This document shows positions 2,356-43,100 of a stretch of 64,000 nt of DNA, piece by piece. The stretch is from Rebecca billardiae RCC1528. Taxonomy: Eukaryota > Protista > Haptophyta. Location: the NCBI GenBank assembly GCA_965240325.2, contig OZ251223.1, forward strand, positions 3,286,001 to 3,350,000, read 5' to 3'. A model generated the notes under the pieces. That model saw nothing but the letters and a program-made list of their open reading frames with translations. It ran no database searches and was not told where the DNA came from. Within the stretch, counting starts at the first letter, position 1. Each line of letters begins with the position of its first letter. The translations under genes and the position numbers were made by a program.

Positions 2356-5136
2356 TCATGACTGCTCCCGGCGCGCCAACAGAGAGGCGATCAGCTCGTC
2401 ATCCTGCAGCTCGTCGGGCAGATCTGCGCCTGGAAACTCAAAGTCCGGCTGCGGCCCGCCACCATGACCATGCCCGCCGCCCTGCGCGTCGTCGTCGCCG
2501 CGCCCGGGGGGGGCGCCAGCACCCATGATCACATCGGCCAGCGAGCCACGCCCTTCTCGAGCAAACTTGTCCTCGAGGTAGTGCACGTTCCGCGCGACGC
2601 GCTCGTTCTCAGCGTCCTCGGCCACCTCCTCCTCGTGCGCCGAGCTCACGATGGCGTAGTCCGTCGAGAGGGTCTCGCGGCTGCGCAGAGCACGCTCGAG
2701 CGGCTCGTCTGCGAGCAGCCGTGGCCACTCGACAGCCGTGTCGAGCTCGTCCGGCCCGTGCGCCTTGCGCAGCACGACGGACACGCTGCTCCGTCCGATG
2801 CGCACGGTCGAGAGCGGGCGTGCCAGCTCAGCGCCGGGGCGCGCGCCATCCCCAGCGAACGGCTGCACAGGTGCGTGCAGCGGCACGTCGATCTCGTACT
2901 CGAGCTGGGCGCGATCGATTGCGTCCGTCGCGCCGACTGCCGGCAATGCTCGGCGCGGGGTGCCGCGCACGCGAAGCCGCAGGGTGGCCGCGGCCGCTTG
3001 TCGCGGCGCGAGCACGTCGACCGTCGCGCTGCGCAGCTGCAAGGTCAAGTGCACGCTGTCGCCGCGCTGCGCCCACGCAGCCGGCGGGAAGTGCGCCACT
3101 TCGTGCGCGAGCAGGAGCGCGCGCGCATCGGTGAGCACGCGGCGCAGGGCATCAGCCCGCTCGGGAGGCAACGGCACGGCAGCCGCAGCTCCGGCGTCGG
3201 CGGCCGCGCCCACTGCGGCACCCGAGAGCTGCCATTCGGTGCGAAGTGCGTCGAGCGCGGCGCCTTCGCCCTCCGCACGGTGGACGCGCGCGACGCGCAG
3301 CACGTCCGGGCCGCTCAGCCCGGCCGCGCACTCGCCGGCGCGGGCGGCGCCACGCTGCTCGCCCCCCCGTGCGCCATCGTCAGCCGGCCCCGCGCCCGAG
3401 GCCGCGCGCTCGTGCAGCAGCGAGCTGAGCCAGCCGCGCACAGCCGCCTCATCCCACTCGCCGACAGGGCCCAGGCCTGCGCCCGCAGGGCGCGCGCTCG
3501 AGCCGCTGGTGCCACGCTGGTGCGCCGTCGCTCGCTCGTCGTCGGGGGTCGGGAGAGTAGTGGCGGCCGCCGAGCCCGCGGCCGAGCGCGCACTCTCGGC
3601 CTGCTGGCGCAACGCTGCCGCCGCGGCCGTGTAGTAGCCACCAAACTCCGGCGCGCGCGCGCCCTCAGGCAGCGAGCGCAGCTGCTGCACGCGCGCGCGC
3701 GCGATCGCCGCGCACGCCTCGAGGGTCTCCACCTCGAGCGCGCGCAGCGCAGCGGCGGCGAGCTCGAGGGCGGCTGCATCGGCGCGCGAGCCGACGCCGC
3801 CGTGCGCGCGCGCGCGCTCGAGCACGTCCGCGTCCGCGTCGCCGTCTCCGTGCTCTGCGTGCGCGCGCAGTCGCTCGCTCGTCACGTGCTCCAGGTTGCG
3901 CGCGACGAGCAGCTCCGTCGAGCGCGAGAGTGGGGCCACGCGCGGAGGCCGCTCGTCGGCATCGGCGAACGAGTCCGGGTCGCATGCCACGTGCTCAGGG
4001 GGCGGCTCGCCTGTCGCGAGCAGCGGCATCACGAGCTGGCGCAGCTCGGCGTGCTCGGCCAGGTACACCCGCAGCGCGGAGACGGTGGGCGCGGGCACGC
4101 GGTGCGCGCCGAGCGCGAGGTTCGCCTCCTCAGGCACACCCAGGCCCTCGCGCAGCAGCCGCTGGCGCAGCACCGCCTCGGCCGCGTCGGCGGCCGCGGC
4201 GCGCTCGCGGAGGCTGCCTTCGTCCATGTGGAACACCACGCAGTGCGCGCGACCCGCCCCGTCGGGCGCGGCCGGCGCCGGCGCGAGCTCACCCCTCGCC
4301 ACCAGCAGCTCGGCGCTCCGGCGCGCGCCCAAGTCGACACGCACCTCTTCGCCCGCGCGGAGCGGGCGCAGCGCGGTCAGCCGGACGGAGTTGTCCTCGT
4401 CCTCGCTGAGCCGCGCGCCCTCGGCGCCCGCCATGCCCGGCTGCCAGTGCCGCGCGCTCGACACGAACGGCAGGATGGCGCGGCCGTGCGCGTCGAGCTC
4501 GGCTGAGCAGCACCAGACGAGTGCGAGCGACAGACGCCACGCGCCGAGGGCGGGCGGGCGCCCCCTCGCGAAGAGGCCCTCGTACTTCGCGGCGAATGGT
4601 CGGATCAGAGACGCGTGCGTGTCTCGGACCTCCTCGTCCAGATCCGCGAGGAGCGCGCCCGCGTCCGTGCCGCGCAGCAGCTCCAGCGTGCGCTTGTCAC
4701 CAAAGATGGGTAGCCCCCGGAGCTCGCCGGCCTGCGGCAGCGTTGCCAGCAGCGCGCTGTGCAAGGACTTGTTGCCGCGCGAGTGCTCGCGGGCGAGCGC
4801 CAGGGCGAGCATGAAAGGCGGCACCACTAGCTCCTCGTGCTCCCTGGCCACGCGCTGGATGGGCCCTCGCGCCGAGACGGCCACGGCCGCCGACATGATG
4901 GCCGACGCGGGCACGTGCAAGAGGAGCTCGCCAGAGCTCACGTTCCGCGCGGCGTGCAGTCGGAGGCCGTCGGCGGCACGCTCGAGGCGCAGCGCCGACG
5001 CGTCAACATCTCGCGCGCTCAGCCACTCCCGTAGCGTCACGTCCTCTTGCAGCGCGTGCTCGAGAGGTGCATCCTGTGCTCGAGAGGTGCTCGAGAGGTG
5101 CAGGATGACCAGCACGAGCCACGTCCGCGTCGCCAT
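2356..5136 (-). CDS. SET-domain (Rubisco LSMT/SETD3-like) protein with N-terminal signal peptide, SAM-like segment and C-terminal CS/p23-like domain
   Basis: ATG 5136 MATRTWLVLVILHLSSTSRA (signal peptide); SET motifs GLRLHAARNVSSGELLLHVP, ILPFVSSARH, LTALRPLRAGEEV; VGEWDEAAVRGWLSSL (SAM-like); WAQRGDSVHLTL...VSVVLRKA...WPRLL (CS-like). Confidence 0.7.
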   Translation of the reverse strand: MATRTWLVLVILHLSSTSRAQDAPLEHALQEDVTLREWLSARDVDASALRLERAADGLRLHAARNVSSGELLLHVPASAIMSAAVAVSARGPIQRVAREHEELVVPPFMLALALAREHSRGNKSLHSALLATLPQAGELRGLPIFGDKRTLELLRGTDAGALLADLDEEVRDTHASLIRPFAAKYEGLFARGRPPALGAWRLSLALVWCCSAELDAHGRAILPFVSSARHWQPGMAGAEGARLSEDEDNSVRLTALRPLRAGEEVRVDLGARRSAELLVARGELAPAPAAPDGAGRAHCVVFHMDEGSLRERAAAADAAEAVLRQRLLREGLGVPEEANLALGAHRVPAPTVSALRVYLAEHAELRQLVMPLLATGEPPPEHVACDPDSFADADERPPRVAPLSRSTELLVARNLEHVTSERLRAHAEHGDGDADADVLERARAHGGVGSRADAAALELAAAALRALEVETLEACAAIARARVQQLRSLPEGARAPEFGGYYTAAAAALRQQAESARSAAGSAAATTLPTPDDERATAHQRGTSGSSARPAGAGLGPVGEWDEAAVRGWLSSLLHERAASGAGPADDGARGGEQRGAARAGECAAGLSGPDVLRVARVHRAEGEGAALDALRTEWQLSGAAVGAAADAGAAAAVPLPPERADALRRVLTDARALLLAHEVAHFPPAAWAQRGDSVHLTLQLRSATVDVLAPRQAAAATLRLRVRGTPRRALPAVGATDAIDRAQLEYEIDVPLHAPVQPFAGDGARPGAELARPLSTVRIGRSSVSVVLRKAHGPDELDTAVEWPRLLADEPLERALRSRETLSTDYAIVSSAHEEEVAEDAENERVARNVHYLEDKFAREGRGSLADVIMGAGAPPGRGDDDAQGGGHGHGGGPQPDFEFPGADLPDELQDDELIASLLARREQS

Positions 5137-5263
5137 CGTGTGACCGCGGCTGTCCGGGCGTGTCTGGATTCTGGAAGAGTGGAGGGTGGTGTCTGGAAGA
5201 GTGGAAGACGCCATCAACCAGGCTGTGAAATCGTTCAGCGCATGGCGCGATCGGCGAGGCACG

Positions 5264-5782
5264 ATGGTCTTTCACGTGATCCTGCCGGGAAAGCCGATGG
5301 TGTCAGCCGAGGGCTTCACTCAGCTCGAGCCCAACCGCTGGGTCCTCCCGATCGAGGATGCCAAAGCGGTTGACGAGCTCGTTGTCTTCCTCTCAGCCCC
5401 TCTCTCTTCGGAGCTAGGCCTTGGCGTGCACATTGCTGCGCCACCCTTCGAGGTCTCCCAATGGCATTTCCTGGGGAGCATCGACAACGACACGCCGACT
5501 GCCGTGTTCAAGCCACGATACGTGTGGTCCGAGCGCGACGCCATGCCGACCGTCGCACAGGTTGGCCTCGAGCTGATCACACGCGCTGAGCTTGCCGCGC
5601 GCATCCCAGAAAGGGCATCCAACGAGGTGCTCGAGGTTGCCCAGCTCATCGCAGCTGACCTCGTGAGATACATCAGCAGCTTCGACGACGCGCCAGCGAA
5701 CGTCATCGACAGGTGGCTGCAGCGTTTCACCACGCGATGTCAGAGTCAGGGCGTCGACTGGCTTAGGCGTCGGGACTCGTGA
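5264..5782 (+). CDS. HIKESHI: Hikeshi/OPI10 family Hsp70 nuclear import carrier
   Basis: MVFHVILPGKP...VDELVVFL...WHFLGSIDNDTPTAVFK...PANVIDRWLQRF resembles the Hikeshi/Opi10 N- and C-terminal motifs; intronless. Confidence 0.8.
   Translation: MVFHVILPGKPMVSAEGFTQLEPNRWVLPIEDAKAVDELVVFLSAPLSSELGLGVHIAAPPFEVSQWHFLGSIDNDTPTAVFKPRYVWSERDAMPTVAQVGLELITRAELAARIPERASNEVLEVAQLIAADLVRYISSFDDAPANVIDRWLQRFTTRCQSQGVDWLRRRDS

Positions 5783-6418: not shown

Positions 6419-6423
<5 letters not shown>

Positions 6424-6488
<65 letters not shown>
6424..6488. repeat. (TA)n microsatellite just downstream of the SPO11 stop
   Basis: About 32 TA units seen directly. Confidence 0.95.
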
Positions 6489-6505: not shown

Positions 6506-7612
6506 TCAGCCTGGAGACGCGACCGCTCGCATCAGCTTGCGTGCGATGAGCTGGGCGAGGGTGACATCCTGCGCGGCCGACGCAGACGAGGCCACGGCGC
6601 CGCTCGCCGGGCCGCCGTGTGCCCCGCTGGTGGAGTCTCCAGCGGCAGCACTGGTCCTGCCAATGTGGTCGATGTCGGTTTTCGCGTCCGTGGCGACCAT
6701 CTTGTCCACCTCGTTCTTGATGAGACGCTCGGTCGCCGAGTCGGGGAGCGATCTCGCAAGCAAGCCGCGGCAGATGGAGCGGTCGCGCTGAGTGAGCGCC
6801 TCGAACCTGGAGGGTGGAAGCCGATCGACGTCAGCGTGGTGCAGGCCGAGCCAGCGCATGCGCGGCACTCGCACGCGCTCGCCCTCCATGCTGGCCTGGG
6901 CCGACGAGGCCTCGCGGTAGCTCAGGAAGATCTGCACGCCCGACGGGTTCCAATCGGTCAGGCACATCGGCACAAGGCGCAGCTGGTCATCAAGCACGCG
7001 CACGAAGGCGCGAGTCGCCAGGTCAGGGAAGCCGCGGCCGGTGCACAGGATCGTCGCGTACGCCTGCGGGAACTGTGCGTCCACGAGCTGCTGGAAGACC
7101 GTGTGCTTCTCGACGACGAGGAGGAATCGCGCAGCGGGCGCGCTCGCGACGAGGGTTGAGATCTCCGAGACGTCGCCTGGGATGCTCCACGGACGTGCAG
7201 ATACATCGATCTGCACTCCGTCGGGGGTGCGCAGGTGCAGCGGGCCGGCGACGACGCCCTTGGGCGCCGCGGTGATGTGCACGGCACTCCGAGGCAGCGC
7301 CGCGCAGCCGAGCTGCGCAGAAAGAAGAGCGAGTACGCGAACGAGCGCATTCGACAAGTCTGACGGCCCAGTGAAGAGCTGCGTTGGCTTCAGCTGATAG
7401 TGCAGATCACGCAACGAGCAGCGCTGCGCGTTGGACAGCATGAGCTGGATCTTGGACAACAGCACCCACTGCTGCGCATACGGCCGCACGCTTCGTCGAC
7501 GCGGAAGCCAGACTGTGCTGCCCATACTTGGTGCGCCTGAAGCCAGCAGTGCATCAAGCGTCGCCAACAGCGCATCGTCGATCGCGCCAAGGACTTGAGC
7601 GTCCGAAACCAT
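6506..7612 (-). CDS. SPO11: Meiotic topoisomerase-VI-A-like protein SPO11 (SPO11-2-like)
   Basis: RDLHY catalytic Tyr motif, APKGVVAG, Toprim FLLVVEKHTVFQQL, TGRGFPDLATRAF, LTDWNPSG (DWNP as in SPO11-2), MRWLGL; likely ATG 7612; the ORF-track extension to 8305 is read-through into the inserted palindrome. Confidence 0.9.
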   Translation of the reverse strand: MVSDAQVLGAIDDALLATLDALLASGAPSMGSTVWLPRRRSVRPYAQQWVLLSKIQLMLSNAQRCSLRDLHYQLKPTQLFTGPSDLSNALVRVLALLSAQLGCAALPRSAVHITAAPKGVVAGPLHLRTPDGVQIDVSARPWSIPGDVSEISTLVASAPAARFLLVVEKHTVFQQLVDAQFPQAYATILCTGRGFPDLATRAFVRVLDDQLRLVPMCLTDWNPSGVQIFLSYREASSAQASMEGERVRVPRMRWLGLHHADVDRLPPSRFEALTQRDRSICRGLLARSLPDSATERLIKNEVDKMVATDAKTDIDHIGRTSAAAGDSTSGAHGGPASGAVASSASAAQDVTLAQLIARKLMRAVASPG

Positions 7613-7731
7613 GATGATGAAGGTACTGGTTCCGCCGCCTTCCGCGTCTCCGCCGCCACGCCTAAGCTCTCGACCAACGGTCTCGTCGTCCAAATAAACA
7701 TTTTCTCGGCGACGAGAAAAGATGGAATTAA

Positions 7732-9251
7732 GGTGGCACGGCAGGAAACCGCCGGACTGCGACGTAACAGCCATGGCTGCCGCGTGCGCACGCCGATTGG
7801 GGGCTCGTGCGCGCCGAGCGCGTACAGCACGGTCCGGAGCGCATGCCGGGTGGTCAAAGCACGTGCGCCGGCCTCCTAGCCCGCCCCCCGATGAGCTCGT
7901 CGCGTCTCTCCTCACGCTCCAGCCGTGGACCAGCGTGCACACGTGCGGGTCGGCTGGCGAGCTGCAGACGCAGTGGATGCGCTGCATGGTTTGTGCGCCA
8001 CTGGCCGCCCAGATGGTCAGAGCGTACGGGGGTGGGCGTGCACACGTGCGTCCAGTCGTTTGAACCGCGCGCAGAGGCTGTTTTGGAGGTGTGCACCTAC
8101 TCGCGGATGTCGGCGGCACTCCGTGGGCAGCCCGTGGGGCCACAGAAGCCACGGCGGGCAGCATTCGGGCGAGATGTACATGGCCCCATGACGGCAGGGA
8201 GCGCTCTGTGCGTACGCTACGGGTCCCGCCGAGGTCATTGATACGGGCTTCGCCTGGGTATGTGGCCTGATCACCCTGCTCGGGGGTCCGCGGATCACCG
8301 TGCATGCGGTGCTGGTGGCCCCCAGCGCCCCGGAGTAGGCTATACGCGGCATGCCAAAACTAGAAATTTGACGTAGAACTTCAACCGGGACCCTAGCTAC
8401 TCTCGAGCCCTTCCCATAAGCTGTGTTCAGCCAGCTCGGCATGCGAATCGGGTTGCACGTTTTGAAATTAACACGAAAATGGTCCAAAATCGCCGATTTT
8501 GGACCATTTTCGTGTTAATTTCAAAACGTGCAACCCGATTCGCATGCCGAGCTGGCTGAACACAGCTTATGGGAAGGGCTCGAGAGTAGCTAGGGTCCCG
8601 GTTGAAGTTCTACGTCAGATTTCTAGTTTTGGCATGCCGCGTATAGCCTACTCTGGGGCGCCGGGGCCACCAGCACCATGGGCGGTGATCCGTGGGCCCC
8701 CGAGCAGCCTGTTCTAGCCACGGACACAGGCGAAGCCCGTATCACTGACCTCGGCGGGACCCGTAGCGTACGCACAGAGCGTTCCCTGCCGCCATGGGGC
8801 CGTGTACATCTCGCCCGAATGCTGCCCGCCGTGGCTTCTGTGGCCCCACGGGCTGCCCACGGAGTGCCGCCGACATCCGCGAGTAGGTGCACACCTCCAA
8901 AACAGCCTCTGCGCGCGGTTCAAACGACTGGACGCACGTGTGCACGCCCACCCCCGTACGCTCTGACCATCTGGGCGGCCAGTGGCGCACAAACCATGCA
9001 GCGCATCCACTGCGTCTGCAGCTCGCCAGCCGACCCGCACGTGTGCACGCTGGTCCACGGCTGGAGCGTGAGGAGAGACGCGACGAGCTCATCGGGGGGC
9101 GGGCCAGGAGGCCGGCGCACGTGCTTTGACCACCCGGCATGCGCTCCGGACCGTGCTGTACGCGCTCGGCGCGCACGAGCCCTCAATCGGCGTGCGCACG
9201 CGGCAGCCATGGCTGTTACGTCGCAGTCCGGCGGTTTCCTGCCGTGCCACC
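7732..9251. mobile_element. 1520-bp non-autonomous palindromic (foldback) DNA element with TTAA target-site duplication; Kolobok/T2-like termini
   Basis: Arm 7732..8492 is the reverse complement of 8494..9251 around a 1-nt centre (8493); termini GGTGGCACGGCAGG...CCTGCCGTGCCACC; TTAA at 7728-7731 and 9252-9255; flanks beyond are unrelated; no transposase ORF. Confidence 0.85.
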
Positions 9252-9294
9252 TTAAAACTAAACGCACCGTTTCATCTGCGAGGCGACGACGGCC

Positions 9295-10662
9295 ATGCTG
9301 CTGGTGCCCCCGGGCGCGGGGCCGCGGCCACCGGCGACGCTCGTGTCCGTGCCTTCCGAGAAGCACCTTCTCGAGCCCCCAGTGCCCCTCGTGTCTGCAG
9401 CCTCGCAGTCGCGGCTGCTCGCGCCGCCTGGACAGGAGCTGCACCAACGGCGAGGATCGACAAAGCCGGTGACCGAGCTCGCGCTGAGACCCCCCAAGCC
9501 CCGATCAGCGCAAACTCGCCGCCCACAGCAGCGCTCTTCTCTGGGTGGCCCGAAGTCGAGCGACCCATGGGAGCGCGAGAAAATCGCTCTGCTCCAGGTG
9601 CTCGGTCTCGAGGAGGCGGCTCTGCGCGACGAGCATCACACATCTGGCGTCGATGCTGCCGTTCTCGCGAGCGCTGCCGAGGATGCACGCGCGGACTTGG
9701 AGCAGGCATCCGCAGCGCATGGGAAGAAGGGCGCGGATAGCGATCGTCCAAGCGCATCGCCGAGTAAGCGCAAGGGCGCCGCCGCCGCCCCCGCCCCCGC
9801 CGCCCCCGCCGCCCCCGAGGCCTCCCGCGTCAGCTCGGAGCTGGTGGAGGCGACGAGCGCGCTTGCCACGGATGCGGCCACGCTGTCCAAGGCGAGCGTG
9901 GTCGCAGAGGAGAGGAGCACGCGCGCGCGGCGCGAGCGGCGAGGGCTGCGCAAGGCCCGCGCGAAGCTGGAGCTGGTGCTCAGTGCGGAGGCCATGACGC
10001 GCGAGTCGGCCAGGCTGCGCGTCGAGTACCAGGAGGAGCTCAAGAGCGCGCTGCTCGAGATGAGCCGCACGGGCGGCGCCGAGCGCACGGCGGGCGGATC
10101 CGACACGGCGGCGGCACAGGGCGCATACGCGCCGCGCACGGGGATGGGCTTGACGTCCGCCTCGCTGAATGCGTACACGCTCGCCGGCGCGCCGAACACC
10201 ACGCCTCGAGCACGCGGGCGAGCGCCCGTGTACAGGCAGTTTTGGGACTCGGCGGCGGTGCCGCTCTGCATCTCGCGCACAGGCTTGCAGGCGAGCTTTG
10301 TGCAGCGCCACAGGCCGCCGCGGCCGTGGCACGCGGGGGGCGCTTCGGAATCGCGGCCTCCGATGCCCCCGCCGCACATGACCGAAGGCGAAGCGCCCGG
10401 TTCGCGACGCAGCACTTCGGCATCGGCGGCCAGACTGCCGCCGCTCGACGGGCGGAATGGCCAGCGCGGTGCCGCGACCTTTGGGCACGAGCGTCCGTGG
10501 CGCTCGCCGACCAGAACACCTGGGGAATTCGGGAAGCCACCGGCGTTCCGTCCGCGGGTGGAGGCCATGCGTTCGGCCGTCACGTTTGCGACAGTGGACG
10601 TGCGCCGCTCGCCACCGCAGCATGCGACATCGCCGCCAGCTCACAGTGCTCGCGTGTCCTGA
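9295..10662 (+). CDS. Hypothetical protein (455 aa) with coiled-coil-like centre and Pro/Arg-rich C-terminus
   Basis: Long ATG-started ORF, divergent from SPO11; helical segment EEAALRDE...RVEYQEELKSALLEM; no family recognised. Confidence 0.6.
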   Translation: MLLVPPGAGPRPPATLVSVPSEKHLLEPPVPLVSAASQSRLLAPPGQELHQRRGSTKPVTELALRPPKPRSAQTRRPQQRSSLGGPKSSDPWEREKIALLQVLGLEEAALRDEHHTSGVDAAVLASAAEDARADLEQASAAHGKKGADSDRPSASPSKRKGAAAAPAPAAPAAPEASRVSSELVEATSALATDAATLSKASVVAEERSTRARRERRGLRKARAKLELVLSAEAMTRESARLRVEYQEELKSALLEMSRTGGAERTAGGSDTAAAQGAYAPRTGMGLTSASLNAYTLAGAPNTTPRARGRAPVYRQFWDSAAVPLCISRTGLQASFVQRHRPPRPWHAGGASESRPPMPPPHMTEGEAPGSRRSTSASAARLPPLDGRNGQRGAATFGHERPWRSPTRTPGEFGKPPAFRPRVEAMRSAVTFATVDVRRSPPQHATSPPAHSARVS

Positions 10663-16612: not shown

Positions 16613-17260
16613 TGCGGCCGCGCGCGCACGCGCCGCGCCGCGCGCGCCCCGCGCGCCGCGCGCGCTGCGGGCCATCCGCTGGCGGCTGGCGGCTGGCGCT
16701 GCGCTCACCGAGCGCGTGCGCACGCGCCGCGCGCGGCCCCGCCCCGCCGCCGCCGCGCGCACGCGCCGCCGCGCAGGCGCACGCGCTGATCGGCGCCTTC
16801 CTCAAGAAGAAGGGGCCGGAGGACGACCTGTTTGAGCAGATCAAGCCGCAGGACCTGAACGACTACTTCCACGGCATCATGGACGGGCTGACCGCCAAGG
16901 CGCGCGCGGCCACGCGCGCGCGCGCAGAGCAGCGGCGAGGGGCGGCCGCGCGCGCGCACGGCCGCAGCGCAGCCGCGCCCAGCCGGCGCGCGCGCAAGCG
17001 CCTCACGGAGCGCGCTCCCGCCGCCGCGCGCGCGTGACGCGCCGCGCGCGGGGCCGCAGGTGTTCCGCACTTACAACGCGTCGATCACGCTCGAGCGGCT
17101 GCTCTCGCAGACCTCCGAGCGCGTCTCGGCGCAGCAGATCGCGAAGGAGGGGCGCGAGACCGCGCTGTGCAACTTCTACGCAGTCGCCAACAAGGAGGTG
17201 GCGGAGCTGTGCAACCACCAGCGCGCGGCGCCCAAAAACTTTGACGAGCAGGTGCGTGTG

Positions 17261-17296
<36 letters not shown>

Positions 17297-17780
17297 TGTG
17301 TGCGTGCGTGCGTGCGTGCGTGCGTGCGTGTGTGCGTGCGTGCGTGCGTGCGCGCGAGGGTGGAGGTTCGGACTGGGCGCGAGCCGCGCGCCGTTCGCGC
17401 GCCGCTCCCGCCGGCTGCTGCCCGCCGCCGCCTGACCCTCGCCCGCCGCGCGCCGCCCTCCGCCCGCCGCCGGGCAGATGGCGCGCATCGACGAGAGAAT
17501 AGACAAGGTGCGCGCCGAGCTCAAGGAGGCCAAGAAGGGCGGCAGCTCCGCGCGCGCGGAGCAGAAGTCGCGGCAGCTCGAGAAGATGGAGGCGGACAAG
17601 CGCACCAAGATCGAGCTCAAGAACGTCGCGCTCGGCACCTCGCGCATCAACTATAACGACCCGCGCATCACGGTGGCGTGGTGCAAGGCGCACGACGTGC
17701 CGATCACAAAGCCGTTCAACAAGTCGCTGCTCGGCAAGTTCACGTGGGCGATGAGCAGCGCGCCTGACTGGAGATTCTAG
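13753..17780 (+). CDS. TOP1: DNA topoisomerase IB; exons 13753-14984, 15538-16573, 16777-16899, 17060-17251, 17478-17780
   Basis: [66 protein letters not shown]|[22 protein letters not shown] (catalytic Tyr); low-complexity K/P/A N-terminus; splice joins restore the frame. Confidence 0.95.
17252..17350. repeat. (GTGC)n microsatellite starting at the donor of TOP1 intron 4
   Basis: gtgcgtgtgtgcgtgcgtgc... seen directly. Confidence 0.9.
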
Positions 17781-33959: not shown

Positions 33960-35675
33960 ATGGCGGAGGGCAAGGTCCGCGCCAAAGCACCGCTCGCGCC
34001 CACCTTGGCGTGGCGTGGCGCGCCCGGCGTGGCGCCCCCTCGCGCGTGCCGCGTTGCTCCCATCTGCCCAGCCCGCACCCACGGGCCGCTCCGCACGCTC
34101 CCCCTCCGCGCAGTGGCCGCGGAGCTGACGCGCGCGCGTGCACACGCGCATGTGGCTGGCATCTGCCGCAGGTACCAGTGACTGTGCTGACGGGCTTCCT
34201 CGGCGCGGGGAAGACGACGCTGCTGAACCACATCCTCACTGCGCAGCATGGCAAGAAGATTGCGGTGATCGAGAACGAGTTCGGCGAGATCGGCATCGAC
34301 GAGTCGCTCCTCGCGCAGAAGTCCGTCTCGGTCGACGAGGAGGTTTACGAGATGAACAACGGCTGCGTGTGCTGCACGGTGCGCGGCGACCTGATCCGCG
34401 TGCTCACCAAGATCCTCAAGTCGGGCAAGAAGCTCGACGCGATCATCATCGAGACCACGGGCCTGGCCGACCCTGCGCCTGTCGCGCAGACGTTTTACGT
34501 GGAGGAGGAGCTGCAGGAGCGCGCGCACCTCGACGGCATCATCTGCCTCGTCGACGCGAAGCACGTGCACAACCACCTGAACGACAAGACAGGTGAGGAC
34601 GCGAGCGAGGTGGTCAGCGAGGCGACGCAGCAGGTCGCCTTCGCCGACCGCATCCTGCTCAACAAGGTCGACCTCGTACCGGATGCTCGCGAGCTGGACG
34701 CGGTCGAGGAGCGGCTGCGCTCGATCAACAAGTACGCAGAGATCAAGCGCTGCCAGCAGGCGACGATCGACGTGTCGTGGGTGCTCGACCTGAAGTCGTT
34801 CGACCTGGAGCGCGTGCTCGAGATTGACCCCAACTTCGTGCCGAAGAAGGAGCCCGCGAAGGAGGAGCACGGCCACGGCCACGGCCACGGCCACGGCCAC
34901 GAGCACAAGGAGGAGCACGGCCACGGCCACGGCCACGGCCACGACCACGACTGCCACGACGAGAGCTGCACCGTCGACCACGGCCACGGCCACGAGCACA
35001 AGGAGGAGCACGGCCACGGCCACGGCCACGGCCACGACCACGACTGCCACGACGAGAGCTGCACCGTCGACCACGGCCACGGCCACGAGCACAAGGAGGA
35101 GCACGGCCACGGCCACGGCCACGGCCACGACCACGACTGCCACGACGAGAGCTGCACCGTCGACCACAGCCACGGCCACGGGCATGGTGCTGACGATGGC
35201 TCGCGCACCGCCCACTGGAGCAGCCGGGTGTCTTCGGTCGGCTTTGTGCGCAAAGGCGACCTTGACATGGACAAGGTGCGTGCCCTCGCGCACACCGATG
35301 CGGGCCGAAGCGGCCCCGCACATGCTGGCCGCTCTGCTGCACCCCTGCGTCAGCAGCTCGACTGCCGACGCTCATCTCATCTGACCGCGCGGTGCGTCGC
35401 GGGCCGCGGCGCGTGCGCCACGCGCGCAGGTCAACGACTGGATCGGCACGCTCTTGCAAGAGAAGGGCCCGGACATCTACCGCATGAAGGGCGTCCTCGC
35501 GCTCAAGGACACGCCGACCAAGTTCGCTTTCCAGGCGGTGCACATGCAGATGCAGGGCGAGATGCTCGGGCCGTGGAAGGAGGGTGAGCCGCGCGAGTCC
35601 AAGCTGGTCTTCATCGGTAAGGACCTCGACAAGAAGGCGCTGGGCGAGGCACTCGACGCGTGCATGGTCAAGTGA
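33960..35675 (+). CDS. COG0523/CobW (ZNG1-like) G3E metal-chaperone GTPase; exons 33960-33974, 34172-35275, 35430-35675
   Basis: [30 protein letters not shown] (CxCC), [36 protein letters not shown]. Confidence 0.95.
34901..35179 (+). repeat. Three near-identical 93-bp coding repeats ([31 protein letters not shown])
   Basis: Units start at 34901, 34994 and 35087. Confidence 0.92.
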
Positions 35676-36205
35676 GCCATGCGGCGCGGCGCGGCAAACG
35701 CAGCGCCTGCTTGTTGGACCGATGTCCGATCGCAGCGCCGAGGCTTGATGGTGACCCACATGCCATTCCGCCACGGGCGGGCACGGCCCACGTGTGACTG
35801 TGACCGTGCGGAGTGCGGCCGACGTGTGCGCCATCAAAAGCGTTCACTTGATTACAGCATACGGCCGGCGGCCCGGCCGCGACCTCTCGGATTCAGAATG
35901 TCGATCGATCCGATGTGCGGTGCCGGCGTGGACGCGTCACGGCCGCCTCAGTCGTAATAATGGCCCGCGGTGCAGGGCGGAGCGCGTAGCGTGGAGCCCC
36001 GCCGGGGGCCCGCCTCACTACGTTGTCAAAAAGATCTTTTGATCAAAGAAAAGGGGACGGGGGACGATTTTGAGGGCTGTTGGAGGGTGAATTTTCGCTT
36101 TTTCGAGGGGTACACCGTCGTACATTGCTGTCTATCCGCAAGAAGCGATTGACGAAATAAGCGCGCCCGCCAATTCGCCGTATGTCGATGGACGGACGTG
36201 GGATC

Positions 36206-37945
36206 AGATACCCGGGGGTGAAACAAGTGAGTATTCCTATCCCTCTTGTATGCTGAAGTACGAGTTTGCCGAGCGACGTTTGATTGTTTTGGGTCGAAAA
36301 CAGCTATGAGGCCAGATTCTTTTGAATAGTGCTTGTTCAAATACGTTACCCGCCTGTCTCGAAGGATGAACCGCCTCGTCATATCAAAAGAGATTCTTTT
36401 CAATAGCGCTTGTGCAACCAAGTTACCCGCCTGCCTCGATGGATGAACCTCCTGTGTCATAATGAAGGGATTGTTTTGAATGGCGCTTGTTGAACCAAGT
36501 TACCCGTCTGTCTCGATGGATGAACCTCCTGTGCCATATGGGGGTAATGAAAGAAAAACTTCGGGTTACCCGCCCGCCAGCGTCTCGCGACGAGGAGGAC
36601 GACGTGCCCAGCGGCAAGCGCGCACATAATATCATCGCCGTCGGCGGGCCCATCTTCGGCCGGCTCGAGCTGATGCACATCACGACGCTCAAGCAGGCGC
36701 TGTCCGTACCGACGTTGGCGCGCCTCCAGCGGATGGTCGACAAAGCACACGTGGGCGAAGGAGGACCACAATCATGGCCGAGTCATCGGAGACGTCGCTG
36801 ACCTCGCGGCTTCAAACCGAACCGCTCAGCCGGTTGCCACCGCGGCCGAGCAGTGCGCGCTCGCCACCGCGGCCGGCGCTGTGCACGGGCGTGCTGAGCC
36901 CGGGCCGCGTGAGCTCGCCCACCTCGCCCGGCGCGCACGCCGACGCCGCCACCGCGGCTCGGCGGCCGGACTACTCTCGGGCGGCGCGTGCGTCCCCCCG
37001 GCCGGCGCGCGCCGCCGTCGCCGCCGCGCAGGCCGGGCGGCAGGCCGTGCACTCGGTGGATGAGGAGACGGCCCTGCTGCGAGATACCCGGGGGTGAAAC
37101 AAGTGAGTATTCCTATCCCTCTTGTATGCTGAAGTACGAGTTTGCCGAGCGACGTTTGATTGTTTTGGGTCGAAAACAGCTATGAGGCCAGATTCTTTTG
37201 AATAGTGCTTGTTCAAATACGTTACCCGCCTGTCTCGAAGGATGAACCGCCTCGTCATATCAAAAGAGATTCTTTTCAATAGCGCTTGTGCAACCAAGTT
37301 ACCCGCCTGCCTCGATGGATGAACCTCCTGTGTCATAATGAAGGGATTGTTTTGAATGGCGCTTGTTGAACCAAGTTACCCGTCTGTCTCGATGGATGAA
37401 CCTCCTGTGCCATATGGGGGTAATGAAAGAAAAACTTCGGGTTACCCGCCCGCCAGCGTCTCGCGACGAGGAGGACGACGTGCCCAGCGGCAAGCGCGCA
37501 CATAATATCATCGCCGTCGGCGGGCCCATCTTCGGCCGGCTCGAGCTGATGCACATCACGACGCTCAAGCAGGCGCTGTCCGTACCGACGTTGGCGCGCC
37601 TCCAGCGGATGGTCGACAAAGCACACGTGGGCGAAGGAGGACCACAATCATGGCCGAGTCATCGGAGACGTCGCTGACCTCGCGGCTTCAAACCGAACCG
37701 CTCAGCCGGTTGCCACCGCGGCCGAGCGGTGCGCGCTCGCCACCGCGGCCGGCGCTGTGCACGGGCGTGCTGAGCCCGGGCCGCGTGAGCTCGCCCACCT
37801 CGCCCGGCGCGCACGCCGACGCCGCCACCGCGGCTCGGCGGCCGGACTACTCTCGGGCGGCGCGTGCGTCCCCCCGGCCGGCGCGCGCCGCCGTCGCCGC
37901 CGCGCAGGCCGTGCACTCGGTGGATGAGGAGACGGCCCTGCTGCG
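36206..37945. repeat. Recent tandem duplication, 876-bp unit (36206-37081; 37082-37945), each copy with three internal 77-bp repeats
   Basis: Copies look near-identical apart from a 12-bp indel and one substitution noticed; identical ORFs in the track are offset by 876; 77-bp units start at 36315, 36392 and 36469. Confidence 0.92.
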
Positions 37946-40153: not shown

Positions 40154-43100
40154 TTAGAGGGTCGCTGCTGCGGCGGGCGGCGCGAGCTCGATGCGCAGCC
40201 CCTTGTACGCATCGCGGAGCTGCGCGGCTGCGGGCTCGCTGCGCGTGTTCAGGTCGACGATGAAGCCGTCGACGGCGGAGCACACCGCCTGCCGGGCGCT
40301 CAGCGACGGCGCGGCCGCGTGCGCGTGGATCCAGCCGGTGACGAGCTCGTGCACCGCGCCTGGCGCGCAGCGCGCGGCGCGGTGGGGGCGCGGACGGGGC
40401 GCCTCGTCAGCGCCAGCGCGCAGGGCGCGCCCGCGCGGCTCCGCGCGCCGCGCGCCGCCGGTGCGCGCACCGAGCAGGTGCAGGCGCGCGCTGCCGCTCT
40501 GCTCCCACAGCGCCTGCATCCGGCTGCCGCGCGCGCTGGGGTCGGCGTAGGTCTTCCAGAGCCGCTCCCAGGGCACGGGCGGCTCGACGCCGGTCGAGAG
40601 CAGCTGCACGACGTGCGCCGAGCTGCCGTCCGCCGACTGCAGCCGCTCCGCCTCGAGCGTCGCGCAGATCAGGTCGAGGCGCAGCACGTACGGCTCGGCA
40701 GGGTGCGGCGCGCAGAAGGCGGCGCGCAGCTCGCGCACCGCCTCGCACGTCGACGCCCAGCCGCCGTCCATCGAGCGCTCGAGCAGGGCGAGCAGGTGCT
40801 GCGCGCGCGTGCGGGGAGGGGGCAGGGGGCCGAGTGGGTGAGTGCACGCTCGGACGTCGACGCAGGCACACACACACACACTCAGTGCACACACACACAC
40901 ACACACACACACAGTGCACACACACACACACACACACACAGTGCACACACACACACACACACACACAGTGCACACACACACACACACACACACAGTGCAC
41001 ACACACACACACACACAGTGCACACACACACACACAGCGGCCCCCACCCACCTTCTCCACGTGGTCGGCGTACTGCTGGTACGGCGCGGCGACGCCGAGC
41101 ACGGCGAGGGCGGCGAGGTGCAGCTGGTGCTGCTCGCACAGGCCGTACAGCGCGTCCAGCTCGAACAGCCTGCGCGCCGCCACGGAGGGCGGCGCGGGGT
41201 GCGCAGCGCGCGCGGAGGCTGCGCGTGAGGCGCGCGGCGGCGCGCGCGGCCGGGGTGCGCACACGCCAGGGCGCGCGCGCGCGCGCGAGCACGCCCGGCG
41301 GCCGGGGCGGGCGATGCGCGCGCACCGCTGGCCCAGCTCGAGCGTGAGGCCGTGCACGCCCGGGTTCGTGCGCGCCACCTGCTCCAGCTGCGTGAGCACC
41401 TGCCAGCCCAGCCCGGCAGCAGCGCGCACGTCGAGCGCAGGGGCGGCAGCCGCGGCGCGCGCGCTCAGCGCGCGTGCCCGCCGCCGTGGCGCGCGCGCGC
41501 GAGTGACGGGCGCGAGGGGCGGCGGCGGCGCGCGCGCGCGCGCGCGTACCTTGCTCTGCGCGCGCACCACGCTGAGCCGCTCCTCCGCGATCCGGACAAA
41601 GTCCGGGCCGAGCGAGCCCCCGGACTCGGAGGCGGCCCGCGCGGCGAGGAGCGCCTGAACGAGCCATGCCTCCCGCTGCGCGAGGGTGGGGGGCGGCTGC
41701 GGCCGGCCCGCGTCGGCGGCGGAGCCCTCGCGCTCGGCGAGCGCGGCGAACGCGCGCGCCGCCTCCACGTGCCACGCGCGCCGCACGTAGAACGTCGCGA
41801 GCGGCTCCCGATGCGCGAGCTTGTTGCACAGCGAAGGCACGTCCGCGGCCGCGCCGGCCGCGCGCAGCATCGGGCCCCACGTGCGCGCGATGGCGTCGGG
41901 GCCCTCGTCGGCGGCGGTGGAGAGGAAGCGCTCGAGCACGGGCGAGTCGAGCGCGGGCAGCACCGCCCCCTGCCCCGCCGCGAGCACCCACCAGAACAGC
42001 CCGATGTGCAGCGCCTCGTCGAGCGGGCGGCGCTGCAGCCCGTAATCCAGCACGCGCTTCCACATGTCGGGCGCGACGCGCGCGGGGGCGGCGGCGGGCG
42101 CGGGGCGCGCCGCGGCGGCGGGCGGCGTGGCGTGCGAGCCCGCGCTGAGCAGCCCCTGCAGCGCGTCCACGCACACGCGGTACGCCGACAGCCGCTCCTG
42201 CAGCGCGCGCCACGCGGCCGGGCTCGCGCCGCCGCCGCCGCCGCCGAGCGCGCCGCCGCCGCCGCCGCCGGGGATCGCGGCGGCGCGCGCGGCGTGGTTG
42301 GGGTCGAGCAGGGCGGCGCGCGCGCACGGCAGGTCGATGATCGCCTCGTACAGCCCGAGCTCGACGAACAGGCTCACCACCGCGCGCAGGTCGATGGCGA
42401 GCGCGTAGTCGGCGCACGTGCGCAGCGCGCCGCGCAGCGCGCGCGCGCGCTCGGCCGGCGGCGCCGTCGAGGCGGTCGCGCTGGCGAGGTCGGTCCACAC
42501 GCGGTAGATGGCGTGGTCGGCGGCGGAGAAGTAGGCCGGGCACTCGCGCTGCAGCCGCGCCACCAGCGCGCCGTCGCCCGCGTGGTCGCGCAGCAGCTCG
42601 AGCAGCAGCGCGCGCGGTAGTTTCTCGGAAAGGGCGGGGTCCCAGCCGGCCGCGCCGCCGCCGGCCGCGCCGCCGCCGCCGCCGCCGCCGGCGGAGGTCG
42701 GCGTGGCGGACGCGCCGGGCGCGGCGCGCGCGCGGGCGGCGACGAGGTCGGCGAAGGTGAGCGACGCGAGCATCGCCTGCTCCGCGTCGGGCAGCCGCGC
42801 TGCCAGCCGCTGCAGGAACGCGAACGGCTGGCGCGCCGGCGCGTCGGCCGACCAGGATTGCGCGGGCGGCGCGCGCGCCGACGCCGACGCCGGCGGCGCG
42901 CCCGCGGCCCACGCGGCGGCGGTGGAGGTCTCGGCGAGGAGGGCGACGGCGGAGGCGGCCTGCGCGGCGCGGTCGAGCAGCCGCCACAGCGCCTCGAGCG
43001 ACGCGCGCTCCTCCTTCTCCACCATCTGCTGCCCGATCGCCGAGCGCACCTGGTCAGGCGAGAGTGCGCGCCGCTGCAGCGCCGAGCCGTGCGCGGCCGC

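Follow-up and report, generated by a model that had tools for sequence, protein, structure and literature searches.

Results

We analysed a stretch of 64,000 nucleotides from the haptophyte Rebecca billardiae RCC1528 (assembly GCA_965240325.2, contig OZ251223.1, positions 3,286,001 to 3,350,000 of the forward strand), hereafter the window. Near its left end lie the gene for SPO11 and, on the opposite strand, a putative divergent neighbour, an orphan open reading frame (ORF). The region between their start codons holds a palindromic element of 1,520 bp with the tetranucleotide TTAA on either side, which is the subject of this analysis. Positions are those of the window, and the features of the locus are collected in Table 1.

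Table 1. Features of the SPO11 locus and of the palindromic element
Feature	Position	Strand	Basis or remark
SPO11, 368 aa, intact	6506-7612	-	Pfam TOP6A-Spo11_Toprim, PF21180, 2.1e-32
SPO11-side intergenic remnant, 115 bp	7613-7727		holds the 8-bp-stem inverted repeat 7701-7720
Left TTAA	7728-7731		read as one target-site duplication copy; junction also in Logan contigs L057 and L058
Left arm, non-coding, 761 bp, first bases GGTGGCACGGCAGGAAACC	7732-8492	+	repeat finder, alignment
Exact 15-mer GCGTGCACACGTGCG, copy 1, subterminal	7933-7947	+	repeat search
Exact 15-mer GCGTGCACACGTGCG, copy 2 of left arm	8036-8050	+	103 bp from copy 1
Divergent patch, left version	8257-8332		arm alignment; 17 of 24 differences, including 3 indel bases
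Central core, spacerless near-perfect palindrome, 2 x 160 bp	8333-8653		arm alignment; one mismatch (8368/8618)
Central base C, palindrome axis	8493		1 nt between arms
Right arm, 758 bp, reverse complement of left, last bases GGTTTCCTGCCGTGCCACC	8494-9251	-	repeat finder, alignment
Divergent patch, right version	8654-8726		mirror of 8257-8332
Exact 15-mer GCGTGCACACGTGCG, right-arm copies	8933-8947, 9036-9050	mirror	repeat search
Right TTAA	9252-9255		read as second target-site duplication copy
Neighbour-side intergenic remnant, 39 bp	9256-9294		adjoins ATG 9295
Putative divergent neighbour, 455-aa orphan ORF	9295-10662	+	GC by codon position 0.72/0.64/0.80, coding-like

Structure of the palindromic element

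A repeat finder reported two pairs of inverted-repeat arms, 7728-8306/8677-9255 (579 nt, 97% complementary) and 8320-8492/8494-8666 (173 nt, 98%, with 1 nt between them). When the left arm was aligned directly with the reverse-complemented right arm, the identity was 98% and the element proper was 7732-9251. Outside both TTAAs the likeness between the arms ends at once, and the flanks are not complementary. An earlier note on this DNA had described arms inverted about base 8493, bounded by TTAA on both sides and ending in GG...CC, and the repeat finder and the alignment both confirmed this description. The element begins with GGTGGCACGG and ends with CCGTGCCACC, giving the termini GGTGGCAC...GTGCCACC. 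A terminus of 23 nt including TTAA occurs in just these two places in the window (expected number: 0.00), where TTAA itself is scarce (30 sites, ~5e-4 per position).

The two arms differ at 24 positions, and the differences are strongly clustered in a patch of 76 bp (binomial P = 1.7e-12), as the earlier note had seen at about 8255-8335 versus 8650-8730. Within this patch, transitions and transversions are equal in number, while six of the seven differences in the remaining ~685 bp of the arms are transitions. The patch is ~20% diverged and the rest of the arms ~1%, and the arms must therefore have different histories there. Arms that elsewhere are 1% diverged cannot have acquired a patch with its own substitution spectrum by decay in place. 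The likely origin is either a tract converted from another member of the family or an asymmetry that the source copy already had. The Rfam search gave no match in the patch, and no compensatory pattern was noticed by eye. We also observed that 24 nt of the right-arm patch (8661-8684) resemble, in inverted orientation, the start of the neighbouring ORF (9290-9313; 21 of 24 nt alike, E 0.005), which is probably due to chance in GC-rich sequence.

The central core has a lower GC content (about 45-58%), and its middle 201 nt are predicted to fold into one uninterrupted hairpin (-134.5 kcal/mol, DNA parameters). All four exact copies of the 15-mer GCGTGCACACGTGCG in the window lie inside the element, two per arm, and this 15-mer is possibly a binding repeat for a transposase or another factor. 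The only other repeat within an arm is one pair of 11-mers.

The flanking genes and the split intergenic region

Both flanking ORFs are intact. Besides the Toprim domain, SPO11 has a weak TP6A_N match; it is full length, and the tyrosine of its DLHYQ motif is invariant in the alignment of homologues. Among named relatives, SPO11 of the haptophyte Diacronema lutheri is the closest (49% identity); relatives from metagenomes are up to 56% identical. When five haptophyte homologues are aligned with it, their N-termini line up with its own, MVSDAQVLGAID, and ATG 7612 is therefore the conserved start. For the neighbouring ORF, the gene caller of the Logan collection gives the same strand and frame (contig L055, gene 3-875), and no Pfam domain, PDB relative or homologue among 5.8 billion proteins was found. 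As the neighbour is a putative orphan gene, the bidirectional promoter named in the earlier note is a plausible reading of the region that it shares with SPO11.

Removal of the element together with one TTAA joins 119 bp (7613-7731) to 39 bp (9256-9294), leaving 158 bp between the two start codons. The earlier note had given this distance correctly and had equated it with the spacing of the other head-to-head pairs in the window. This holds for two of the five pairs (155 and 168 bp) but not for the other three (49, 32 and 333 bp; ORF-based starts).

Two further repeats lie close to SPO11. Seven nucleotides to the left of the TTAA is an inverted repeat with an 8-bp stem and a 4-nt loop (7701-7720, TTTTCTCG-GCGA-CGAGAAAA), which could be a promoter element or a feature of the target site and has a weaker relative inside SPO11 at 7107-7122. 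A (TA)34 microsatellite (6420-6488) begins 18 nt past the SPO11 stop codon, and the Logan contigs break there (L053 ends at 6450 and L057 starts at 6463).

Coding capacity and folding

GC content by codon position is flat in all six frames of the arms (0.63-0.67), compared with 0.68/0.51/0.80 in SPO11. Five arm ORFs had no Pfam match even at E = 1, and a word-index protein search with the arm ORFs returned no homologue. An exhaustive HMMER search with arm ORFs gave a single match (E = 6.7e-4) that looks like an unrelated protein brought up by amino-acid composition, and it was rejected. We conclude that the element is non-coding, and the earlier note's view of it as non-autonomous agrees with these results: the arms have no codon periodicity, Pfam match or homologue.

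The SPO11 frame is free of stop codons for 231 codons upstream of the conserved ATG, across the left arm to an ATG at 8305, and a transcript begun inside the element could thus encode an N-terminally extended SPO11 (open frame 6506-8305, minus strand). We considered whether this frame is a coding remnant and rejected the idea. An equally long stop-free run occurred in 51 of 500 dinucleotide shuffles, so that the open frame is a by-product of composition, and it shows no codon periodicity.

As a single strand, the whole element is predicted to form one stem in which all 745 of 745 pairs join arm to arm (-1755 kcal/mol with RNA and -1134 kcal/mol with DNA parameters). Rfam returned matches centred on the axis to mir-548 (57 bits), mir-7131 (56 bits) and MIR8001 (51 bits). 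These scores lie below the respective gathering thresholds of 90, 74 and 90 bits, and we rejected membership in a structured-RNA family in favour of a generic perfect hairpin.

The left junction in independent assemblies

We compared the locus with Logan k=31 de Bruijn assemblies of the runs ERR14847148, ERR14847150 and ERR14847151, in which six proteins of the window are on record. The contigs are 99.98-100% identical to the window, and the same organism is therefore present in that collection. As a control, gene products cut off at a contig edge were found to be indexed by the contig look-up. The SPO11 contig was predicted to end ~30 nt past the point at which both flanks converge on the shared TTAA and arm. 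The predicted cut product (window 6506-7756, minus strand) was found in two runs, ERR14847148 and ERR14847151. The contigs concerned, L057 and L058, are 100% identical to the window over 6463/6464-7756 and read ...GGAATTAAGGTGGCACGGCAGGAAACCGCCGGA. They cross from the flank through TTAA into the element and end 25 nt inside it, as expected at a repeat branch. The left junction of flank, TTAA and element is thus present in reads assembled by a different method.

An allele lacking the insertion would break the contigs at 7731 and would give a complete SPO11 product (in-frame stop at 9272-9274, start at 7612 or 7693). The contigs continue past 7731, no path through an empty site was present in either of the two runs of the same organism, and none of nine guesses at the complete ORF was on record in the Logan look-up. 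Hence there is no appreciable empty allele in these samples.

A k=31 graph built from the window only reproduced the end of another Logan contig exactly (14596) and predicted an end at 7757 for the SPO11 contig. Both runs stop at 7756, and the k-mer at 7727 (A, TTAA and the start of the arm) must therefore have a second predecessor outside the window. The simplest source would be another copy of the element, in whose flank TTAA is likewise preceded by an A, although an allelic variant could also explain it; we take this as a hint of a further copy. Three predicted edge-cut products for the right junction and the arms were not on record in the Logan look-up.

At the neighbouring ORF we observed that L055 starts at 9788 in two runs, although in the window-only graph a single unitig should run on from 9226 without a break. 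The stretch at 9777-9817, which is all GC and codes for Ala and Pro, must either have k-mers in common with sequence outside the window or vary between reads.

Search for relatives and for a transposase

Exact probes for the terminus and the centre were compared with viral, metagenome and prokaryote-genome collections, and all matches extended over 19-21 nt only, as expected by chance. The terminal 19-mer had no match in viral contigs and 45 in metagenomes. None of the latter reached more than 2 bases beyond the probe or lay in a TTAA context, and 33 of the 45 shared one flanking sequence, apparently from a single recurrent gene in soil-like samples; they were rejected as relatives. The central 21-mer had no viral match and one match in a Phycisphaerae genome bin, which did not extend and was also rejected (~0.3 expected by chance).

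In Diacronema lutheri and two metagenomic relatives, SPO11 lies next to other genes, and neither a palindrome nor any likeness to the element was found there. As these loci are not syntenic with ours, they offer no orthologous empty site. In D. lutheri (L046, 9070-10000), SPO11 is divergent from a deoxyhypusine synthase gene across a gap of 931 bp, which is much longer than the neighbouring gaps.

Other features of the window

The other large ORFs are ordinary eukaryotic genes and encode Nup133, RCC1, a class 3 lipase, topoisomerase I, a glycosyltransferase, a TylF methyltransferase and a SETD6-like SET protein. The last of these, an ORF of 952 aa (2356-5214, minus strand), has no Pfam match and a weak likeness to SETD6 lysine methyltransferase (PDB 3qxy, E 1.7e-4); a Hikeshi-like gene (5264-5782) lies divergent to it, just 49 bp away. 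A tandem duplication at 36191-37909 consists of a unit of 876 bp in copies that are 98% identical, each holding three repeats of 77 bp (36314-36538 and 37190-37414). Inside a long ORF, a near-exact tandem repeat (93 bp x 3.2, 34885-35184) made up mostly of CACGGC units may encode a histidine-rich repeat protein. A (GTGC)26 microsatellite (17252-17356) and a CA-rich array of 27-bp units (40867-41036) both lie amid very GC-rich sequence, and the GC content of the window reaches 75-80% over 40-52 kb.

Discussion

In our judgement the palindrome is, with good probability, a cut-and-paste DNA transposon of 1,520 bp, non-autonomous and of foldback type, that has genuinely inserted here. A rare TTAA abuts both of its ends. 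Each flank is a unique sequence that differs from the other and has no relation to the arms, and deletion of the element restores an intergenic region of ordinary length. The arms lack coding sequence but contain a subterminal repeat, and the assembly graph branches at the element as it does at a repeat. The earlier note had likewise argued for a real insertion rather than a read fold-back, and that view is upheld by the differing flanks, the differing arms, the plausible empty site and the junction found in two runs. Its description of the insertion as recent is not established, since the arms are 1% diverged outside the patch and this divergence could predate the insertion.

Such an insertion would require a DDE transposase acting in trans with specificity for TTAA, which would have cut a TTAA in the divergent intergenic region of 158 bp; the element would have inserted there with duplication of the four bases. 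As both ends would be the same end in opposite orientation, either terminus would be a valid substrate. The palindrome itself would most probably have formed before insertion: at an internal break, fold-back priming or a switch of template would have led to one end of a longer element being copied back on itself. That inverted duplications can arise through fold-back priming at breaks is documented (PMC10622511, PMC7999016). Two independent head-to-head insertions would not account for the structure, because there is no TTAA at the axis.

Several observations weigh against this interpretation. A single copy has been seen directly; no second copy or fragment was found elsewhere in the window, and the exact probes gave no true match in the three kinds of collection searched. 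The arm ORFs brought up no relative in protein space, the single match noted above looking unrelated. The hint of another copy comes from a one-base offset. No transposase was found among 15 window ORFs compared with Pfam, nor in the 952-aa SETD6-like ORF, and none of the scanned ORFs is a DDE_Tnp_1_7 gene. Because Kolobok has no Pfam model (PMC5751038), the lack of a transposase in the window is weak evidence. As TTAA is self-complementary, the pair may be a duplication or four extra bases of the palindrome, the two being indistinguishable, and the ends may also be parsed as a TA duplication with A...T termini. Moreover, the one transposon survey of a haptophyte that we found, in Tisochrysis lutea, reports piggyBac and does not report Kolobok (PMC5963040), and our literature search found no report of Kolobok in haptophytes. 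The earlier note had looked to other copies and an empty allele to settle the matter: no empty allele appeared in two runs, and a further copy is so far a one-base hint.

Assignment to a superfamily

piggyBac ends start with CCY (5'-CCY...RGG-3'). Kolobok elements are set apart from them by 5'-RR...YY-3' termini together with TTAA duplications, a distinction that the earlier note had drawn and that is found in PMC9587614; specificity for TTAA is a feature of both superfamilies (PMC13565253). Non-autonomous elements are classified by their termini and duplications, the Repbase rule being an equal length of duplication and a match at terminal positions 1-11 with 1 mismatch allowed (PMC4455052). 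In our element, a single insertion, TTAA abuts both ends, and the termini are GG...CC, an instance of the RR...YY pattern, which about 1 in 4 random sequences would also show. They fit the Kolobok signature and not the usual piggyBac ends, in a two-feature match of low information. The TTAA would suit piggyBac equally, while the ends GGTGGCAC...GTGCCACC lack the initial pyrimidines. We infer a non-autonomous transposon of foldback type that targets TTAA and bears a Kolobok-like signature, the superfamily being a tentative assignment. The part of the earlier proposal of a Kolobok-type element that stands is the fit of TTAA and GG...CC; a related copy was not found in our searches, and no candidate for an autonomous partner, which would have matching termini and encode a Kolobok DDE transposase with the C/DxxH signature, was found among the window ORFs scanned.

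Non-autonomous Kolobok elements, including the short inverted-repeat elements of Xenopus T2, would share with ours the TTAA, the RR/YY termini, the absence of coding sequence and mobilisation in trans. They differ in being shorter (insect Kolobok average ~386 bp, compared with 1.5 kb; PMC5199201) and in having short terminal repeats around an unrelated core, whereas our element is one palindrome throughout. Non-autonomous derivatives of piggyBac share the TTAA, belong to a superfamily that is present in a haptophyte (PMC5963040) and differ in their pyrimidine-start ends. With strict miniature inverted-repeat transposable elements our element has in common that it is non-coding with inverted repeats and a duplication, but at 1,520 bp it exceeds their size of <~800 bp.

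Foldback and palindromic elements such as Drosophila FB and the PALTTAA elements of C. elegans, a palindromic non-autonomous family, likewise consist of two long, non-coding, hairpin-forming inverted arms. The arms of Drosophila FB are built of tandem subrepeats, and its duplications are of 9 bp. Here the arms are unique sequence with two 15-mers each, the flanks are TTAA, and there is no spacer beyond one base; a Foldback of the Drosophila type was rejected on account of the TTAA flanks and of arms without tandem subrepeats (one 15-mer pair and one 11-mer pair). A PIF/Harbinger parse with a 3-bp TWA duplication was also rejected, as it would need asymmetric termini. Around the axis, ~85-125 nt match covariance models of the mir-548/Made1 type as a perfect hairpin, but at 50-57 bits against thresholds of 74-90 this is a generic likeness of stems and not of a sequence family. 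Fragile long palindromes, such as the palindromic AT-rich repeats of humans and those engineered in yeast, are likewise long, near-perfect and spacerless with a centre of lower GC content (PMC7999016), whereas ours is GC-rich beyond the core and has a mismatched patch away from the centre.

Alternative explanations

Large spacerless palindromes are a known failure mode of long-read libraries, and those of this size are unusual, so that a fold-back or chimeric long read, or a mis-join, might have created the inverted duplication; no contig was recovered for the right junction or the centre. We regard such an artefact as extremely unlikely. A fold-back would have copied the flank too, but the two flanks differ and, when joined, form a typical region of 158 bp, and the arms differ from each other at 24 positions. 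Two independent de Bruijn assemblies hold the left junction and end at the expected repeat branch. A genome without the insert would have run straight through and would have yielded a complete SPO11 product, of which none is on record. Alternatively, a break might have taken up DNA from elsewhere, which fold-back priming in the course of repair then made into an inverted dimer, with TTAA at its ends by coincidence; this would be compatible with the one copy seen directly and would draw on the documented process cited above (PMC7999016, PMC10622511). This explanation leaves the rare tetranucleotide (~5e-4 per position) at both ends, the clean restoration of the intergenic region and the additional graph branch at A, TTAA and arm unaccounted for. 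Furthermore, a chromosomal fold-back duplicates the adjacent flank, whereas the arms are unrelated to the flanks, and we consider break capture improbable.

The insertion of an element of the same kind by another transposase has the best prospects among the alternatives, though it is still doubtful. The enzyme would be that of a piggyBac with atypical ends or of a Tc1/mariner/pogo element parsed as TA|AGGTGG...CCACCT|TA. piggyBac families are reported from T. lutea and Kolobok is not, and any TTAA-flanked element can formally be parsed again as TA-flanked. With TA as the duplication, the outer T and A must match by chance, and A...T termini are untypical of Tc1/mariner. The GG...CC termini argue against piggyBac, whose ends are set apart from the RR..YY ends of Kolobok (PMC9587614). 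We see very little likelihood that the palindrome is instead a functional element of the host, that is, a regulatory module or a hairpin- or small-RNA locus controlling SPO11 or its neighbour. Its position exactly in the promoter, its perfect stem of 745 bp as RNA and the resemblance of its centre to models of transposon-derived microRNA precursors (mir-548, 57 bits; mir-7131, 56 bits) would suit that role. The Rfam scores are under the gathering thresholds (74-90 bits) and indicate a generic hairpin, no counterpart was found upstream of SPO11 in Diacronema lutheri or the two metagenomic relatives, and both the TTAA on either side and the empty site that deletion restores speak for an insertion.

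Consequences of the insertion

If the palindrome affects transcription, the likeliest gene to be affected, judged by position, would be the neighbour rather than SPO11, since it keeps 39 bp of its native upstream sequence as against 115 bp. Two transcripts begun at the centre and directed outward would have the same sequence and could not pair, so that only read-through of the whole element would give a hairpin RNA. Silencing or rewiring of SPO11, hairpin RNA and the formation of a cruciform, which the earlier note had raised, are speculation. Hairpins, cruciforms and breakage are most to be expected of palindromes that are long, near-perfect and spacerless (PMC7999016). We give little chance to a more far-reaching model in which the palindrome is stably kept as a symmetric upstream module for both genes and read-through into a 745-bp hairpin RNA places SPO11 under small-RNA control. 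Were that model true, this lineage would have to tolerate long perfect palindromes to an unusual degree, and no Kolobok-type foldback family would have been described from haptophytes before.

Though real, the insertion is an event of an ordinary kind, and the family is new. As a single insertion it can help annotation and serve as a strain marker, and it brings no new principle. Its position, 115 bp from SPO11 and 39 bp from an orphan gene, means that it could alter the control of sexual reproduction. If confirmed, the family would extend the so far poor catalogue of haptophyte mobile DNA by a foldback transposon that targets TTAA, and the locus would offer a natural case in which to test how a long palindrome with no spacer is tolerated by a compact, GC-rich genome.

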